Part shown: piece after piece, positions 20,034 through 26,617 of the stretch
Numbering within the stretch: the stretch's first letter is position 1
Layout: the number at the start of each line of letters is the position of its first letter
Source of the DNA: Octopus sinensis
Lineage: Eukaryota
DNA: 50,694 nt
Assembly (NCBI RefSeq): GCF_006345805.1
Contig: NW_021826214.1
Span: 1-50,694, forward strand
Direction of reading: 5' to 3'
Position numbers and translations under genes: made by a program
The notes under the pieces: model-generated
What the model saw: only the letters and a program-made list of their open reading frames with translations
The model's database searches: none
Told to the model about the DNA's origin: nothing

Positions 20034-20138
20034 ATGTCTAAGATTATCTTGGTTACTGTCCTAGTCGCCTGCTTGGCAATGATGGTGTCCGCAGGCCCAG
20101 TGAAGAAGGAGACGCGTGCTGTAAAATTTATGAAGCAG
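20034..20138 (+). CDS. Secreted two-EF-hand Ca2+-binding protein, coding exon 1 (signal peptide; MSKIILVTVLVACLAMMVSAGPVKKETRAVKFMKQ)
   Basis: ATG at 20034 in an AAAATG context. Short basic N-region, hydrophobic core and V-S-A|G-P signal-peptidase-like site. Donor CAG|GTATGT at 20139 (phase 0). An upstream acceptor TTTCTTTTTCTGTAG ends at 19993, implying a 5'UTR intron. Confidence 0.9.
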
Positions 20139-20295
20139 GTATGTGTAATTCTTGTCTCAAATCTACTTCAACACCACCACACCACCACCACTTATAAACA
20201 CCTTCCACGCTGCAATTGTCTTCGTTCCAGATCACGATCTCAGATCAGGTCACTTGCTATGCAAGTACATCTCAGTTATTTTGTCTTTGTTGCAG

Positions 20296-20491
20296 TTACG
20301 CGATTCTGGCCAAACCCAGGAGGAAATTAATACAGTATACTCAGTGTTTGACGGGGACGGAGACGGGCTACTTGACCAAGCAGAACTCACGCAATTCCTT
20401 AGTATAATAGATTCTGAAAATGCTGAGGGTATGGTTGGTTTGGTCCTCCTGTTCGGCGATAAAGACGCGGATCAGAAAATCAGCAAAACTG
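20296..20491 (+). CDS. Secreted two-EF-hand protein, coding exon 2 (LRDSGQTQEEINTVYSVFDGDGDGLLDQAELTQFLSIIDSENAEGMVGLVLLFGDKDADQKISKT)
   Basis: Acceptor TTTGTCTTTGTTGCAG ends at 20295 (157-nt intron, phase 0, frame preserved). Canonical EF loop DGDGDGLLDQAE and a second loop DKDADQKISKT[E]. Donor CTG|GTATGT at 20492 (phase 1). Confidence 0.92.
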
Positions 20492-20526
20492 GTATGTAAC
20501 TAGAATTCCTTATATAAATATTATGT

Positions 20527-20913
20527 GGAGGCGCAATGGCCCAGTGGTTAGGGCAGCGGACTCGCGGTCATAATATCGCGGTTTCGATTCCCAGACCAGG
20601 TGTTGTGAGTGTTTATTGAGCGAAAATACCTAAAAGCTCCACGAAGCTCCGGCAGGGGATGGTGGTGATCCCTGCTGTACTCTTTCACCACAACTTTCTC
20701 TCACTCTTACTTCCTGTTTCTGTTGTACCTGTATTTCAAAGGGCCGGCCTTGTCACTCTCTGTGTCACGCTGAATATCCCCGAGAACTACGTTAAGGGTG
20801 CACGTGTCTGTGGAGTGCTCAGCCACTTACACGTTAATTTCACGAACAGGCTGTTCCGTTGATTCGGATCAACCGGAACCCTCGTCGTCGTAACCGACGG
20901 AGTGCTTCCATTC
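20527..20913 (+). mobile_element. tRNA-derived SINE family C, full length (intron 2)
   Basis: A-box TGGCCCAGTGG and B-box-like GTTTCGATTCC; 3' end GGAACCCTCGTCGTCGTAACCGACGGAGTG also seen in degenerate form at about 2395-2445. Confidence 0.85.
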
Positions 20914-20963
20914 CATATAAATATTAATATGTATATGTGTGTGTATACATACATACATACAAT

Positions 20964-21378
20964 AGGCGCAGGAGTGGCTGTGTGGTAAGTAGCTTGCTTA
21001 CCAACCACATGGTCCCGGGTTCAGTCCCACTGTGTGACACCTTGGGCAAGTGTCTTCTGCTATAGCCCCGGGCCGACCAATGCCTTGTGAGTGGATTTGG
21101 TAGACGGAAACTGAAAGAAGCCTGTCGTATATATGTATATATATATATATGTGTGGTTTTCTGTGTCTGTGTTTGTGTGTCTGTGTTTGTCCCCCTAGCA
21201 TTGCTTGACAACCGATGCTGGTGTGTTTATGTCCCGTCACTTAGTGGTTCGGCAAAAGAGACCGATAGAATAGGTACTGGGCTTACAAAGAATAAGTCCC
21301 GGGGTCGATTTGCTTGACTAAAAGGTGGTGCTCCAGCATGGCCGCAGTCAAATGACTGAAACAAGTAAAAGAGTAAAA
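20964..21378 (+). mobile_element. tRNA-derived SINE family B (CORE-like centre), full length
   Basis: Head AGGCGCAGGAGTGGCTGTGTGG, B-box GGTTCAGTCCC, CORE-like GTGACACCTTGGGCAAG, internal TA/TG tract, tail GACTGAAACAAGTAAAAGAG. Confidence 0.92.
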
Positions 21379-21611
21379 GGCGGCGAAAGCTGGCAGAAAC
21401 GTTAGCGCGCCGAGCGAAATGCTTAGTGGTATTCCGTCTGTCGTTACGTTCTGAGTTCGAATTCCGCCGAGGTCGACTTTGCCATTTCATCCTTTCGGGG
21501 TCGATTAAATAAGTACCAGTTACGCACTGGGGTCGATGTAATCGACTTAATACCTATGTCTGTCCTTGTTTGTCCCTTCTATGTTTAGCCCCTTGTGGGC
21601 AGTAAAGAAAT
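21379..21611 (+). mobile_element. SINE family A full length, directly after the family B tail
   Basis: Complete match. Confidence 0.92.
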
Positions 21612-21735
21612 ATATACACACAAACACTATGTACTCATATATGCATATGTATATATGGACACACACATATATCTACACACACACACACATATGAACATGT
21701 ATGTGCATACATATATATAAATAAAAATATGTGTA

Positions 21736-21767
<32 letters not shown>

Positions 21768-21783
21768 TATGCATGTGTGTGTA

Positions 21784-21843
<60 letters not shown>

Positions 21844-21975
21844 GGCGCGTGTGTATGTGTATTTCTGGTCTGCTTTGAACAAAAGGAGAACAACAGAGAA
21901 TCGCTATTGAAATGGAAGGTAGACAACTCTGACACAGTTTAACGTTTCTTCACCACAAGGGAGATCACTACGTTG

Positions 21976-22006
<31 letters not shown>

Positions 22007-22013
22007 TATTATG

Positions 22014-23629: not shown

Positions 23630-23721
23630 GTATGTATGTATGTATGTATGTATGCATGCATGCATGCATGCATGTATGTATGTATGTATGTATGTATGTA
23701 TGCTTCTATGTATGTAGTATG

Positions 23722-23755
<34 letters not shown>

Positions 23756-24006
23756 TGTATGCATGTATGTATGCATATATATATATATATAATATATATA
23801 TTATATATATATATATATATACATATATATATACATATATATATGTATGCTTGTATGCTTGTATGTATGTATGCATGTATGTATAGATATATATATATAT
23901 ATATATATATGTGTGTATATATACATATATATAATATATATATATGTATGTATATGTATGTATGTATGTATGTATGCATGTATGTATGTATGTATGTATA
24001 CATATA

Positions 24007-24059
<53 letters not shown>

Positions 24060-24349
24060 TATATATACATATATATATGTATGTATGTATGTATATGTAT
24101 GTTTGTATGTATGTATGTATGTATTTGTATTTATAACTTAACCTTATGAACTCTCTAAGCTCTCTGACGAAGCCCTGAGACATACCCATGTACCTAAATC
24201 TTATCTGCCAAATACTTCAGTTCACTGAAGGGATAGAAGTATAATCGGGTACTATGGCCCTTAGAGAGAAACAGCTGTAAGATATTATCCTACTTCCTGT
24301 TATCTACGATAAATATTTTAATAATTACTGGTATTTTTTATATATTATA

Positions 24350-25598
24350 CGAGGGGCGTTCAATAAGTAATGCCCCTGACCCACTTCCCATAGCAGTAGA
24401 GCAACGAAACTTAGCACAGTTATTAGTCTTTTTCTACATAGGAACCACCCAGAGTTACGCATTTCTCCCATTGTTTGATGCAGCTCTGGAGACCGTTTTT
24501 GTAGAAGACCCCAGCTTGGTCCTCCAACCTGAACGTGACATCAGAAATCAAGGCTGCATCATCTGGGAAACGCTTTCCTTTCAAAAACAACTTCATGGCT
24601 GGGAAGAGGTGAAAATCAGAGGGTGCAAGGTCAGGAAAGTAGGGGGATGGGGGAGGAGTTCATAGCCATACGCCTGTGCTTCTGATCTGGCGACAAGCGA
24701 GTTGTGGACCGGAGCATTGTCCTGCAGGAGGAGGATGTCTTTGCTGATCTTGACCGCCTCTTGATTTTGATAACTTAATTTACTCAAAAGTGAAGCATAA
24801 TAGGCTCCTGCAATTGTGGTACCCTTTGCCAGGAAATCTGTCATCACTATCCGTCCTAGTCCCAGAAGACTGTGAGCATGACCTTGCCAGCGGAGGGCTG
24901 CACCCTTGCCTTCTTTGGAGGGGGTGAGTCACGGTGCTTCCACTGCATTGACTGGGCTTTGGTCTCTGGATCATCGTGATGGACCCAGGTTTCATCCTGT
25001 GTAATCAGTCTTTTGAAAAATTTTGACTCATTTTCTTGGCACATCTCCAAATTCACCCTCGAGCACTCGACGCGTTCTTGCTTCTGGAAAGGCGTGAGCA
25101 ACCTGGGAATCCATCTGGCAGGCACCTTTTGCATATGCAAATGGTCATGAATGATAGTTTCCACAGACCCGGTACTAATCTTGACCTCATGGGCTATAAT
25201 TATGCGACGATCTTCCAAAATGGCAGCCTCAACTTGACGGACAGATGCCTCATCAATGGCAGAAGGGGCGACCAGATCTGGGAGCTGTTTCCACAGAGTT
25301 CCGACCATGTTTGAATTCACGATGCCAGCGTTTTACAAGGTCATATGATGGGGCATCATCACCATAAGTTACTTTCATTTCATCAAAAGTCTCCCGTGGT
25401 GTGCGTCCTTTCAAATACAAAAACCGGATCACTGCTCGATACTCAACAGGCTCCATTTCACACTTGACTCGGTTCAAACACCTGTAAATCAGAAACCACA
25501 ATTAATTCAGAGCTGTAATTTGCCACTTACTCTATAGAGATATAAATGATTGCACAAGCAAAAGTGGGTCAGAGGCATTACTTATTGAACGTCCCTCG
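24350..25598 (-). mobile_element. Full-length mariner (irritans-like TIR), 1249 bp, TA TSD, disrupted transposase 24423-25456
   Basis: 37-bp TIRs CGAGGG(G/A)CGTTCAATAAGTAATGCC(C/T)CTGACCCACTT (2 mismatches) with TA at 24348-49 and 25599-600. Motifs MEPVEYRAVIRFL, RSGRP, WIPRLL, TQDETW, LQDNAPVH and a shifted DLAPSDFHLF; several frameshifts and stops. Confidence 0.95.
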
Positions 25599-25941
25599 TA
25601 TATGTAAAGCATAATATGTTATACATGTATGTATATTGTTATAATGTTTTTTTAAACAAATAAATACACATAACATAATGACTAAAAGTTAATGAATACC
25701 ACCTATTGACCCCATCCATTTTCTTATTGCCGTATAAATTAAGGGTATAAAAACTTTTTTACCCCCACCCGTTTATTACATTCAGTAGTGTAATTGCCAT
25801 GCAAAGAAAAAAAAATTGTGTATTAATAATTGGGTATTCTATCAGCAGTATATCGGATAGATATTATCCCTTAGTTGGTTGGACTCACAACCTCCAACTT
25901 TCTTGGAATCATATATATATATATATTATATATATATATAT

Positions 25942-26251
25942 AACATACAATATTAGATATGTCCATATATGTGCACATATGCACATGTCTAATATTGTAT
26001 GTATATATTTTATTAATTTGCCTGTACGACTGATAATTCGCTTGCCACTCGTGATGGTATTTTAATAATACCATCCCTATATATATATATATATAATATA
26101 TATATATATATATAAACATACAATATTAGATATGTCCATATATGTGCACATATGCACATGTCTAATATTGTATGTATATATTTTATTAATTTGCCTGTAC
26201 GACTGATAATTCGCTTGCCACTCGTGATGGTATTTTAATAATACCATCCCT
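25942..26251 (+). repeat. Two identical 137-bp units (25942-26078, 26115-26251) separated by (TA)n
   Basis: Base-by-base identical by eye; period 173. Confidence 0.9.
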
Positions 26252-26265
26252 ATATATATATATAT

Positions 26266-26297
<32 letters not shown>

Positions 26298-26310
26298 ATA
26301 TATACATACA

Positions 26311-26515
26311 TGTGACCTCGTGAGCACCGCCAGCAATTTTTTTTCCTCTGTCTTCCCTTCTCGGGATCTTTCCTTCTCCTTTGTTCCGACGAAGAGCTCC
26401 GCTCGAAACGTTAAACCCTCCTTCCCTTCTTTCCTGAGCGTCCAATAATACTTTATTTGTTCCACGTCCTCGCGTTGCTGTGTTTTTTTTTTTGTGTTTT
26501 CTTGTTTGGATTAAC
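26311..26515 (+). mobile_element. Penelope-like pLTR-type unit with HHR-like core, flanked by (TA)n
   Basis: Core CCGACGA (26386-92)-A-GAGC/GCTC stem-GAAAC (26405-09)-GTT; same ends as 10756-10966. Confidence 0.65.
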
Positions 26516-26579
26516 TATATATATATATATTGAATGTGTTGGACTAAAAAAGATATTTCTTTGCTTCTGTATTTTTCAG

Positions 26580-26617
26580 AGATGGTCGAAATTATCAATG
26601 CAGCCAATGATCTATGA
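26580..26617 (+). CDS. Secreted two-EF-hand protein, coding exon 3 ([E]MVEIINAANDL*)
   Basis: Acceptor TTTCTTTGCTTCTGTATTTTTCAG ends at 26579. The phase-1 join G|AG supplies the invariant Glu12 of EF-hand 2, followed by an amphipathic exit helix and TGA at 26615-26617. AATAAA lies about 80 nt downstream. Confidence 0.85.

Follow-up and report, generated by a model that had tools for sequence, protein, structure and literature searches.

A probable secreted two-EF-hand protein of octopods, annotated as troponin C in Octopus sinensis

The window, i.e. the whole 50.7-kb stretch of DNA analysed, comes from Octopus sinensis (contig VCDQ01003506.1), and the cephalopod host that the earlier note had read from the letters was right. 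It contains an intact gene with four exons, one non-coding and three coding, that encodes a small EF-hand protein of a family restricted to octopods (octopuses and argonauts so far). We put at about 0.55 the probability that the gene encodes a secreted EF-hand pair, permanently loaded with Ca2+ and similar to the C-lobe of calmodulin, that forms a fast-evolving binding module or ligand. This reading is suggested by the octopod restriction combined with a conserved exon 1, a fast-changing EF-hand surface and a tandem duplication in Argonauta.

The three coding exons, bordered by GT-AG splice sites, join in frame into a CDS of 339 nt for a 112-aa precursor, and their coordinates as first proposed were exact (Table 1). 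Intron 1 has the donor CAG|gtatgt (20138/9) and the acceptor ttgcag|T (20295/6), and intron 2 has CTG|gtatgt (20491/2) and ttttcag|A (26579/80). The product matches RefSeq XP_029654107.1 with 100% identity from end to end. Intron 1 is identical to that of O. vulgaris at 156/157 positions. Intron 2, which interrupts the codon of residue 12 (Glu) of EF loop 2, differs widely in length (about 10.5 kb in O. vulgaris and 1–1.7 kb in Argonauta) at an unchanged position and phase; in O. sinensis it contains microsatellites, SINE-like repeats and a degraded mariner element. The layout of three coding exons and the intron phases are common to O. vulgaris and two Argonauta hians genes, which excludes a chance origin of the gene model. 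In the collection of RNA-derived contigs searched, none carried this exact O. sinensis protein. The gene had been described as missed by the ORF track. It is indeed absent from that track, but merely because introns split it, and it is not new: both RefSeq and the O. vulgaris annotation already contain it.

The non-coding upstream exon corresponds to residues 5–38 of the O. vulgaris model CAI9737175 (tblastn), and its donor caag|gtaag (16224/16225) joins the acceptor at 19993/4. The O. vulgaris model has a 51-aa N-terminal ‘extension’ whose frame is broken in O. sinensis by an indel and which also contains an in-frame stop there. Since the O. sinensis upstream exon in addition has no ATG ahead of the start codon at 20034, it is untranslated. 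The TATA-like box TATAAAAA in this exon is also kept in O. vulgaris and may be the putative core promoter of the gene. If so, the real first exon would be just ~20–30 nt long. Such a short exon clashes with the longer one of the O. vulgaris model.

Table 1. Features of the gene in the window (positions count from the first letter of the window).
Feature	Position	Strand	Remarks
5'UTR exon (non-coding)	16123..16224	+	mapped from O. vulgaris gene model; true 5' end uncertain
TATA-like box TATAAAAA	16167..16174	+	~50 nt 5' of upstream-exon donor
Exon 1	19994..20138	+	acceptor tctgtag|a at 19993/4 inferred from O. vulgaris model
Exon 1, 5'UTR	19994–20033	+	
Exon 1, codons 1–35	20034–20138	+	signal peptide 20034–20093; KETR 20106–20117; onset of conserved basic amphipathic helix
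Intron 1	20139..20295	+	157 nt, phase 0, GT-AG
Exon 2	20296..20491	+	codons 36–100 and base 1 of codon 101
Exon 2, EF loops		+	EF loop 1 20350–20385; EF loop 2 20458–20491, finished by 26580–26581
Intron 2	20492..26579	+	6088 nt, phase 1, GT-AG
Exon 3, coding part	26580..26617	+	last two bases of codon 101, codons 102–112 (...EMVEIINAANDL), stop TGA (26615–26617)
AATAAA, likely polyadenylation signal	26698..26703	+	81 nt past stop; read from sequence

The precursor starts with MSK, followed by 15 apolar residues (mean Kyte-Doolittle 3.09) and VSA|G. The peak of mean hydropathy over 15 residues lies at aa 4–18 and reaches 3.09 in the Octopus proteins and 2.97 in the Argonauta proteins. Judged by the classical n/h/c-region and (-3,-1) rules, this organisation is that of a clear signal peptide of about 20 aa, as had been proposed, and aa 1–20 are conserved across the family: O. 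sinensis and O. bimaculoides agree at 20/20 positions, and so do the two argonaut copies. In the AF2 model the segment is a detached helix of low confidence. We infer from these features that the protein is secreted.

The sequence KETR follows 5–8 residues after the predicted cleavage site and is invariant in all family members. It had been suggested to end a propeptide, and it fits the loose [KR]-x-x-[KR] (K-x-x-R) convertase pattern; moreover, a conserved signal/pro exon next to a variable mature exon recalls precursors of toxins and peptides. A convertase could then cut after KETR, remove a pro-segment of 5–8 residues and free an 84-aa EF-hand protein. However, KETR is neither dibasic nor R-x-[KR]-R, the conserved basic amphipathic helix (KETRAVKFMKQLR) starts exactly at R28 in the AF2 model, and the residues following R28 (A/G-V-K/Q-F/L-L/M-K) are conserved too. 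Given this helix start, the invariance of KETR can equally be explained structurally, as a helix cap. The motif itself stands and the propeptide is weakened; we regard such further processing as unlikely, and it is compatible with the secreted binding module and no true alternative to it.

The mature chain has a mass of about 10 kDa and a pI of 4.2 in O. sinensis, and it lacks Cys beyond residue 20 and ends in ANDL, both as noted earlier. Both EF loops had been called canonical. This is fully correct for loop 1 (DGDGDGLLDQAE, aa 54–65), while loop 2 (DKDADQKISKTE, aa 90–101) keeps every ligand position but carries Q in place of G at position 6, a change found in O. sinensis and O. vulgaris but not in their relatives, which have G, and one that may lower the Ca2+ affinity. 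All members retain ligand positions 1, 3, 5 and 12 in both loops, except that position 12 of O. bimaculoides falls outside its truncated model. The Pfam model EF-hand_1 reaches 29.8 bits (cut-off 25.4, E = 3e-7), and EF-hand_7, with 28.5 bits, falls slightly short of its cut-off of 30. AF2 models the mature chain with five helices (pLDDT 78.9), and EF-hand proteins were the only Foldseek matches. In the PDB sequence search, aa 34–108 align to residues 74–147 of calmodulin with E about 1e-8 for the single sequence and 1e-11 to 1e-12 for the family profile. By sequence, the pair is closest to the linker and C-terminal lobe of calmodulin-like proteins. No other EF-hand exon was found anywhere in the 50.7-kb window, where tblastn of calmodulin matches only exon 2.

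Searches of 5.8 and 1.8 billion proteins returned relatives solely in O. vulgaris, O. bimaculoides and A. hians. In the profile search, four family clusters had E <= 1e-45 and the next match, with 1.7e-7, was already among generic EF-hand proteins that are about 40 orders of magnitude weaker. Of the 1.84 billion representatives searched, P0002 and P0070 alone match from the first residue on. The searches turned up no characterised orthologue, in agreement with the earlier expectation. The tandem paralogue that had been suggested as a check is missing from the O. sinensis window, but A. hians does have two tandem gene copies.

Divergence within the family is uneven: exon 1, with the signal and the N-terminal helix, is conserved and exon 2, with the EF-hand pair, has diverged. 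The two A. hians paralogues share 97.1% of their nucleotides in exon 1, 79.6% in exon 2 and 94.7% in exon 3, compared with about 90–92% in collinear non-coding DNA. Exon 2 has therefore diverged 2–3x faster than adjoining non-coding DNA (Fisher p = 1.5e-4 to 7e-7), with the Ca ligands retained. For exon 2, dN is 0.254 and dS is 0.188 (omega = 1.35), a difference that is not significant (p = 0.67); exon 1 has an omega of 0.15. Synonymous divergence in exon 2 is somewhat above the non-coding level (p = 0.03). Some of this pattern could have arisen without positive selection, either by relaxed constraint or through a mosaic history in which the flanks were gene-converted and exon 2 is older. Assuming orthology, O. 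sinensis and O. bimaculoides share 27/65 residues in exon 2. O. sinensis and O. vulgaris differ by 3 non-synonymous and 0 synonymous changes, and two of these three substitutions are located in the C-terminal tetrapeptide.

In the proposed mechanism, a cleavable signal peptide (aa 1–20) would bring the protein into the secretory pathway, and the mature acidic, Cys-free chain would consist of the basic amphipathic helix followed by one EF-hand pair. The Ca2+ level of sea water and cephalopod blood is about 10 mM, whereas typical EF-hand sites have a Kd of 0.1–10 uM, so both sites would be permanently filled outside the cell. A 10-kDa protein with two sites is also unable to buffer 10 mM Ca2+. 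An extracellular Ca2+ sensor or buffer, as the earlier note had it, is thus unlikely on general grounds. Ca2+ would instead be a structural cofactor that stabilises the fold in place of disulfides and has no signal role, and the binding partner (prey, gametes, microbes or matrix) might itself be changing or differ between species. Statolith, sucker, skin, egg and salivary secretion had been suggested as sites of action. These tissues are without support so far, since the accession did not appear in the available portions of the supplements to the O. vulgaris proteome papers on skin mucus, ink and salivary glands, and the argonaut papers on the eggcase matrix and the genome mention no EF-hand, calmodulin or troponin-like proteins in their text.

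RefSeq names XP_029654107.1 “troponin C, skeletal muscle-like [Octopus sinensis]” and UniProt has the same name, which would fit a cytosolic Ca2+ sensor of the troponin C/calmodulin kind with the hydrophobic N-terminus as a membrane anchor or left untranslated. Calmodulins are indeed the top sequence matches, and the in-frame Met16/Met17 could in principle begin a signal-less form. However, troponin C is a cytosolic protein of about 146–160 aa with four EF-hand motifs, whereas the octopod protein has two and a signal peptide, and exons for an N-lobe were not found across the contig. For the real octopus troponin C (A0A6P7SK96, 146 aa), the alignment covers just 31 residues, at 32% identity and E = 0.01, and the likeness is limited to the EF-hand superfamily. 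With two EF-hands and so little resemblance the database name is wrong; it is a similarity artefact. The first 20 residues are moreover the best-conserved part of the family, with the classic layout of a signal peptide, and the first ATG is preceded by A at -3 (in Argonauta, it also has G at +4). A cytosolic sensor is therefore highly improbable.

A resident of the ER or Golgi lumen like MCFD2 or Cab45, which would bind a cargo receptor or cargo inside the pathway in a Ca2+-dependent way, is less easily dismissed but still improbable. MCFD2, the soluble EF-hand partner of the cargo receptor LMAN1/ERGIC-53, has the same architecture of a signal peptide and a single EF-hand pair without a transmembrane segment, and both proteins are small and lack a classical KDEL. 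Its structure (4yge_B) is among the Foldseek matches and superposes on the octopod fold with a TM of 0.78 (normalised to the target) and 26% identity over 64 columns. The Octopus C-termini, -NDL in O. sinensis and -SEL in O. vulgaris (...AASEL), end in [DE]L, somewhat like variant KDEL-type retrieval signals, and may keep the protein in the ER or Golgi; the luminal Ca2+ of 0.1–0.5 mM would give meaning to Ca2+-dependent binding and release. On the other hand, MCFD2 ranks only 32nd to 43rd, behind parvalbumins, calbindin D28K, NCS-1 and CIB1 by Foldseek E-value, is missing from the best 60 PDB sequence matches and shows no specific sequence affinity. The [DE]L ending is not conserved either: Argonauta has ...MQRK or ...MERK, and this is where most O. 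sinensis–O. vulgaris substitutions lie. As expected of a sorting factor, the housekeeping gene MCFD2 is conserved across animals, but the octopod family is found in octopods only and its EF-hand domain evolves faster than flanking non-coding DNA. Slightly more doubtful still is a role as an acidic Ca2+-binding matrix protein in a mineralised structure such as the statolith, stylet or calcitic Argonauta eggcase. The acidic mature chains (pI 4.2–5.2) with a signal peptide, the rapid evolution known from many shell-matrix proteins and the duplication in Argonauta, a maker of a calcified eggcase, would all fit. Yet canonical high-affinity EF-hands are not known to be typical of crystal-binding matrix proteins, the gene is intact in benthic octopuses without a shell, the argonaut papers are silent as mentioned above, and the stronger profile matches include no molluscan SMP-type protein, those named above background being all octopod. 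Small EF-hand shell-matrix proteins with signal peptides do occur in abalone (Hdh-SMP5) and bivalves (calconectin of pearl oyster), and like the octopod protein these are acidic, with about 134 aa (PMC10741955). The family profile detected no sequence relationship to them, and they are expressed in mantle and larval shell stages, whereas octopuses have no external shell.

NlSEF1 of the brown planthopper, from a lineage unrelated to octopods, offers a precedent for the use of EF-hand proteins outside the producing animal. This Ca2+-binding protein is strongly expressed in the salivary gland and is described as an effector on host-plant defence responses (PMC5241783). The octopod protein would meet other conditions outside the cell. 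A lowering of Ca2+, by which NlSEF1 reportedly acts in plant sieve tubes, would fail at the 10 mM Ca2+ of blood or sea water. The C-lobe of calmodulin is the closest sequence match (27% identity over the aligned region), with the two loops starting 36 residues apart in both proteins and no gaps in loop spacing, and in a manual residue mapping 16/17 hydrophobic core and cleft positions of calmodulin are still hydrophobic. Nevertheless, the octopod protein has one lobe and carries the signal peptide and basic helix where calmodulin has its N-lobe. The incoming helix of EF-hand 2, part of the unusually hydrophobic EGMVGLVLLFG of exon 2, reads MVGLVLLF and is hydrophobic all round, compared with EVDEMIRE in calmodulin; and calmodulin is almost invariant, whereas this protein is fast-evolving and lineage-restricted. 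Parvalbumin (1rtp) is the top Foldseek match of the mature model (91 columns, TM 0.57/0.50, E 6e-3). It is cytosolic, has a two-helix AB domain and shares only about 20% identity, but both proteins have an N-terminal helical segment followed by an EF-hand pair, and by analogy the N-terminal helix could cap the hydrophobic face in a parvalbumin-like role.

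The 50,694-bp sequence is the entire contig VCDQ01003506.1 of the Octopus sinensis assembly GCA_006345805.1, with DNA that is rich in repeats and has ~37% GC. The three plus-strand coding segments proposed in the earlier note proved exact to the nucleotide: they splice in frame into 339 nt (112 codons), starting with an ATG that has A at -3, joined through two GTATGT donors and two pyrimidine-rich AG acceptors and ending in a TGA stop, with AATAAA 81 nt further downstream. Intron 2 interrupts the codon of Glu101, the 12th residue of the second EF loop. The 112-aa precursor, MSKIILVTVLVACLAMMVSAGPVKKETRAVKFMKQLRDSGQTQEEINTVYSVFDGDGDGLLDQAELTQFLSIIDSENAEGMVGLVLLFGDKDADQKISKTEMVEIINAANDL, matches XP_029654107.1 / A0A6P7TXV7 from end to end at 100% identity, an entry named 'troponin C, skeletal muscle-like [Octopus sinensis]'. 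The note had described the gene as missed by the ORF track. This holds for the prokaryote-style ORF list, which cannot join exons and contains two ORFs with one exon inside each, but RefSeq already predicts the gene. Every gene of the family (relatives in O. vulgaris, O. bimaculoides and Argonauta hians) for which DNA is available has the same three coding exons and intron phases. The gene is real, was rightly reconstructed and is publicly annotated under a wrong name.

Coordinates of the EF-hand gene and of other elements in the window
Feature	Position	Strand	Remarks
5'UTR exon	16123-16224	+	donor 16224/5; maps from the O. vulgaris CAI9737175 extension
TATA-like box, conserved	16167-16174	+	TATAAAAA
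Acceptor joined to 5'UTR exon	19993/4	+	mapping of the O. vulgaris model
Coding exon 1	20034-20138	+	
Coding exon 2	20296-20491	+	
Intron 2	20492-26579	+	
Coding exon 3	26580-26617	+	
Listed ORF	19971-20330		
Listed ORF	20152-20499		
SINE-like repeat	82-588		tail as 184-bp tandem array
SINE-like repeat	20527-20600		
SINE-like repeat	20965-21040		
SINE-like repeat	21400-21560		
(ATA)n microsatellite	6662-10159		~3.5 kb; ~1186 copies, 83% matches
Degraded DNA-transposon gene	12767-13480	-	
Degraded DNA-transposon gene	18780-19506	-	
Degraded DNA-transposon gene	24856-25320	-	
Element with second mariner-type remnant	~24350-25600		in intron 2
Hairpin	22009-22137		in intron 2
173-bp repeated unit	25911-26286		in intron 2; x2.2, 97% identity
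Low-complexity strand-asymmetric tract	34000-36300		
Low-complexity strand-asymmetric tract	38100-41100		
Long triplet array (ATG)	38172-38494		
Long triplet array (ATT)	41825-42638		

The O. vulgaris orthologue CAI9737175 is modelled with 163 aa; it differs from the O. sinensis protein by G40D, N110S and D111E and carries 51 additional residues at the N-terminus, derived from a distant 8-nt exon and the 5'UTR exon. The 8-nt coding exon with which this model starts lies 30.5 kb upstream of the 5'UTR exon (10001-10008 and 40553-40654 of the O. vulgaris locus on OX597833.1) and stretches the gene model to 45.5 kb. The frame of the extension is broken by a 1-nt indel in O. sinensis, where the frame of the main ATG contains an upstream stop and no upstream ATG. 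Lastly, the TATA-like box falls within the sequence of the extension. The 51 residues are thus almost certainly an annotation artefact and we rejected the 163-aa form as the true protein. On these four grounds the extension is untrustworthy; we conclude that the first exon is non-coding and that translation starts at 20034. The O. bimaculoides model A0A0L8IEU0 (101 aa, C-terminus ...KLTKSGM) reads past the exon-2 donor into intron 2 (GM and a stop; the window equivalent would be KTGM and a stop); exon 3 and residue 12 of the second EF loop are missing from it.

Several other elements were observed around the gene. The hairpin in intron 2 is near-perfect, with ~60-nt arms (tagaaggagcttctacaggactagaactgtttcattcaaaagaaatcatcaggaagcc and its reverse complement) and (TA)n on either side, and resembles a small insertion of the foldback or MITE type. 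(TA)n also borders each copy of the 173-bp unit, and low-complexity sequence dominated the output of an inverted-repeat scan of this intron. Two mariner-type transposase remnants (Pfam Transposase_1) are present, and a frameshift-split pogo/Tigger-type DDE_1 remnant lies immediately upstream of exon 1. The SINE-like repeats have tRNA-like heads (e.g. ggcgcaatggcccagtggttagggcagcggactcgcgg...) and a common tail (...tcatcctttcggggtcgattaaataagtaccagttacgcactgg...); tRNA (ARAGORN) and Rfam scans returned nothing in the window, these repeats included. The (ATA)n microsatellite lowers the GC content to ~3% over 8-10 kb, and GC skew is -0.6 at 34-36 kb. The two strand-asymmetric tracts, CT-rich and GAT/ATG-rich, give rise to numerous long but spurious ORFs in which P/S/L, D or H abound, and no gene is evident there.

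Residues 1-20 consist of Met-Ser-Lys, 15 unbroken apolar residues (mean hydropathy 3.09) and Val-Ser-Ala|Gly, and satisfy the (-3,-1) rule. By this rule-based call the signal peptide of about 20 aa suspected earlier has a classical layout, and its conservation argues for entry into the secretory pathway, into which it would route the protein. The mature chain has 92 aa (~10.1 kDa, pI 4.2), is free of Cys as had been noted, and contains no N-x-S/T sequon in its sequence. The absence of disulfides and glycosylation sites together with two intact EF loops suggests that Ca2+ itself stabilises the fold. K25-E26-T27-R28 is invariant across the family, as are K34, R37 and the Ca ligands; processing of the precursor at KETR (residues 25-28) has a low probability and would be compatible with the binding-module reading below. 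The C-terminus varies: ANDL (O. sinensis), ASEL (O. vulgaris), QRK or ERK (Argonauta). Since it is not conserved, KDEL-type retention was rejected as a trait of the family, and might at most be a possibility in Octopus alone.

A canonical EF-hand loop spans 12 residues: positions 1, 3, 5 and 12 supply oxygen ligands, position 6 is Gly and position 8 is hydrophobic. Both loops had been called canonical and acidic. Loop 1 (aa 54-65, DGDGDGLLDQAE) is fully so, and loop 2 (aa 90-101, DKDADQKISKTE) keeps every ligand position but has Gln instead of the Gly found at position 6 in its relatives. The Pfam EF-hand_1 score of 29.8 bits exceeds the cut-off of 25.4, and the EF-hand pair, at 28.5 bits, stays slightly under its own. 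The protein shows the loops and paired motif of the EF-hand superfamily and is predicted to bind Ca2+. AlphaFold2 on the family alignment gave a pLDDT of 69.5 for the precursor, with a detached signal helix, and 78.9 for the mature chain. Both models contain a helix RAVKFMKQLRD (aa 28-38), after which come the four helices of the EF-hand pair (43-53, 63-73, 78-89 and 99-111) and two short bridges at residues 60-61 and 97-98, with regional pLDDT of 73-89. Foldseek against PDB retrieved EF-hand proteins only (parvalbumins, calbindin D28K, NCS-1, CIB1, C-lobes of calmodulin and troponin C, MCFD2), all with E of at least 4e-3, and therefore singled out no specific structural relative. By sequence, calmodulins match best: residues 34-108 align with calmodulin 74-147, the end of the central helix and the C-lobe, at ~27% identity. 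Where calmodulin has EVDEMIRE, the second EF-hand has an incoming helix with apolar residues on all faces (MVGLVLLF; MVGILLLF, MFIMVALM and FLVMLVLS in relatives), which is unusual for the fold. We infer that the apolar face is covered by the conserved amphipathic N-terminal helix as a parvalbumin-like cap, by a partner or by a second subunit.

HMMER, run exhaustively over 1.84 billion cluster representatives, and profile searches of 5.8 billion proteins recovered as family members only the O. sinensis / O. vulgaris protein, A0A0L8IEU0 of O. bimaculoides and two 111-aa proteins of Argonauta hians, all with E <= 1e-45; in the profile search the next match was a generic fungal EF-hand protein at 1.7e-7. 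Stronger-scoring HMMER matches outside the family were mostly giant multi-EF-hand repeat proteins with scores summed over repeats and were discarded as relatives. No member from squid, cuttlefish, Nautilus or another mollusc was seen in the databases searched, whose coverage of those proteomes may be incomplete. The family is small, signal-bearing, built on a single EF-hand pair and, as far as these searches indicate, octopod-restricted. The two argonaut genes lie head to tail ~20 kb apart on contig BAAFZT010000021. Nearby tandem paralogues, raised as a possibility in the earlier note, are absent from the window, where tblastn with the protein, calmodulin and octopus troponin C found the three known exons only, and from the 65-kb O. 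vulgaris locus.

The gene evolves unevenly along its length. Between O. sinensis and O. bimaculoides all 20 signal residues are identical, with 10 of 14 in the rest of exon 1 and 27 of 65 in exon 2; between the argonaut paralogues the corresponding values are 20/20, 13/14 and 39/65. At the DNA level these paralogues are 97.1, 79.6 and 94.7% identical in exons 1, 2 and 3, and 90% over the 60 nt immediately 5' of exon 2. Their collinear non-coding DNA is 89.8% identical (92.2% without a non-homologous insertion), so exon 2 has changed faster than its surroundings, by a factor of two to three (Fisher p = 1.5e-4 to 7e-7). Nei-Gojobori estimates gave omega = 0.15 for exon 1 and, for exon 2, dN = 0.254, dS = 0.188 and omega = 1.35, a difference between dN and dS that is not significant (p = 0.67). 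Synonymous divergence of exon 2 is also somewhat above the non-coding level (p = 0.03). With dN close to dS and dS raised, the exon pattern may owe something to partial gene conversion of the flanks or to relaxed constraint. O. sinensis and O. vulgaris differ by three non-synonymous and no synonymous changes at 1-3% intron divergence, too few for interpretation. It seems safe to state that the signal/N-terminal exon and the Ca ligands are under strong selection, and most of the EF-hand domain surface under little or no purifying selection.

The accession of the protein was not found in the accessible parts of the proteome supplements on skin mucus, ink and the posterior salivary gland of O. 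vulgaris, and the troponin C present in those parts is genuine troponin C only. In the collection searched no RNA-derived contig carried the exact protein, and only the genome contig itself was returned. We found no paper containing any of the five family accessions, nothing on the protein in literature on octopus or cephalopod EF-hand, signal-peptide, venom, salivary-gland or troponin C proteins, and no mention of EF-hand proteins in a 2026 cephalopod venom preprint.

The protein had been proposed to act as an extracellular Ca2+ sensor or buffer. Typical EF-hand affinities lie in the micromolar range, against ~10 mM Ca2+ in sea water and cephalopod blood; outside the cell the sites would therefore be constantly filled, which makes a sensor or buffer unlikely and a Ca2+-loaded binding module more plausible. 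Dockerins and the SPARC EC domain are modules of this kind. Function beyond that of a secretory-pathway Ca2+-binding module is a matter of inference; in the boldest reading, given a rough probability of one in four, a calmodulin-type lobe entered the secretory pathway in the octopod ancestor and went on to serve in extracellular recognition, shaped by diversifying selection. It might be a saliva or venom component that targets prey proteins, a ligand of gametes or the egg coat, or an immune binder, with Ca2+ as structural clamp only and the helix surfaces as a variable 'paratope'. Secreted proteins that meet changing partners in feeding, reproduction or defence typically change fast at the surface, are confined to one lineage and occur in tandem copies.

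Residence in the ER or Golgi, in the manner of MCFD2 or Cab45, would agree with the architecture and, in a loose way, with the -NDL and -SEL ends; it is at odds with the fast evolution, the narrow distribution and the unconserved C-terminus, and we consider it unlikely. A role in a biomineral matrix would suit the acidity and the argonaut duplication, and has a precedent in abalone SMP5, a small secreted EF-hand shell protein (PMC10741955). Against this role, which appears quite improbable, the text of the argonaut eggcase-matrix papers mentions no EF-hand protein; neither calmodulin nor troponin is mentioned there, nor any of the three in the text of the argonaut genome papers. A cytosolic troponin- or calmodulin-like role is contradicted by the domain count and the conserved signal and has very little chance of being correct.

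If the recognition role is true, cephalopods would possess a new class of secreted EF-hand ligand that evolves fast. Cephalopod novelties are frequently tied to lineage-restricted, fast-evolving secreted proteins, and this gene is a small, tractable example on one of the most conserved folds of eukaryotes. Its signal/N-terminal exon is frozen and its EF-hand exon changes rapidly, a clean contrast, and in the argonaut it is also duplicated in tandem. Should secretion, tissue and partner be assigned, this modest lead would show the reuse of an intracellular Ca2+ sensor module outside the cell.

Compared with named protein types, the protein differs most clearly from the one whose name it carries. 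Troponin C has four EF-hand motifs in two lobes (~150 aa) and is cytosolic without a signal peptide, whereas the protein here has two motifs and, by the rule-based reading, a conserved hydrophobic signal-type N-terminus; no further EF-hand exon lies anywhere in the 50.7-kb contig. Octopus troponin C A0A6P7SK96 (146 aa, from a proteome supplement) matches it in BLASTP over 31 residues only (32% identity, E = 0.01). Motif number, this short match and the N-terminus rule out troponin C, and the name 'troponin C, skeletal muscle-like' in RefSeq and UniProt, a similarity artefact, misleads for the O. sinensis gene and its relatives in Argonauta and O. vulgaris. The CREC family (reticulocalbin, calumenin, Cab45) was rejected as well, with its six or seven EF-hands and usually a C-terminal HDEL-type signal against two EF-hands and ANDL, ASEL, QRK or ERK ends. 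MCFD2, a small soluble protein known for a Ca2+-dependent complex with LMAN1/ERGIC-53, likewise combines a signal peptide with one EF-hand pair at the C-terminus, but the likeness is one of architecture only: it is absent among the 60 best PDB sequence matches and ranks 32-43 in Foldseek (E = 0.025-0.03), behind parvalbumins, calbindin D28K, NCS-1 and CIB1, so a specific affinity is not supported. In the profile search, the comparison that bears on shell-matrix proteins of the SMP5 or calconectin type, named matches above background were all octopod and the others generic EF-hand proteins. A signal peptide combined with a single EF-hand pair is a known type, represented by MCFD2 and molluscan SMP5 and, as a looser precedent, the planthopper salivary EF-hand effector NlSEF1; the octopod protein is a new, uncharacterised representative of it.
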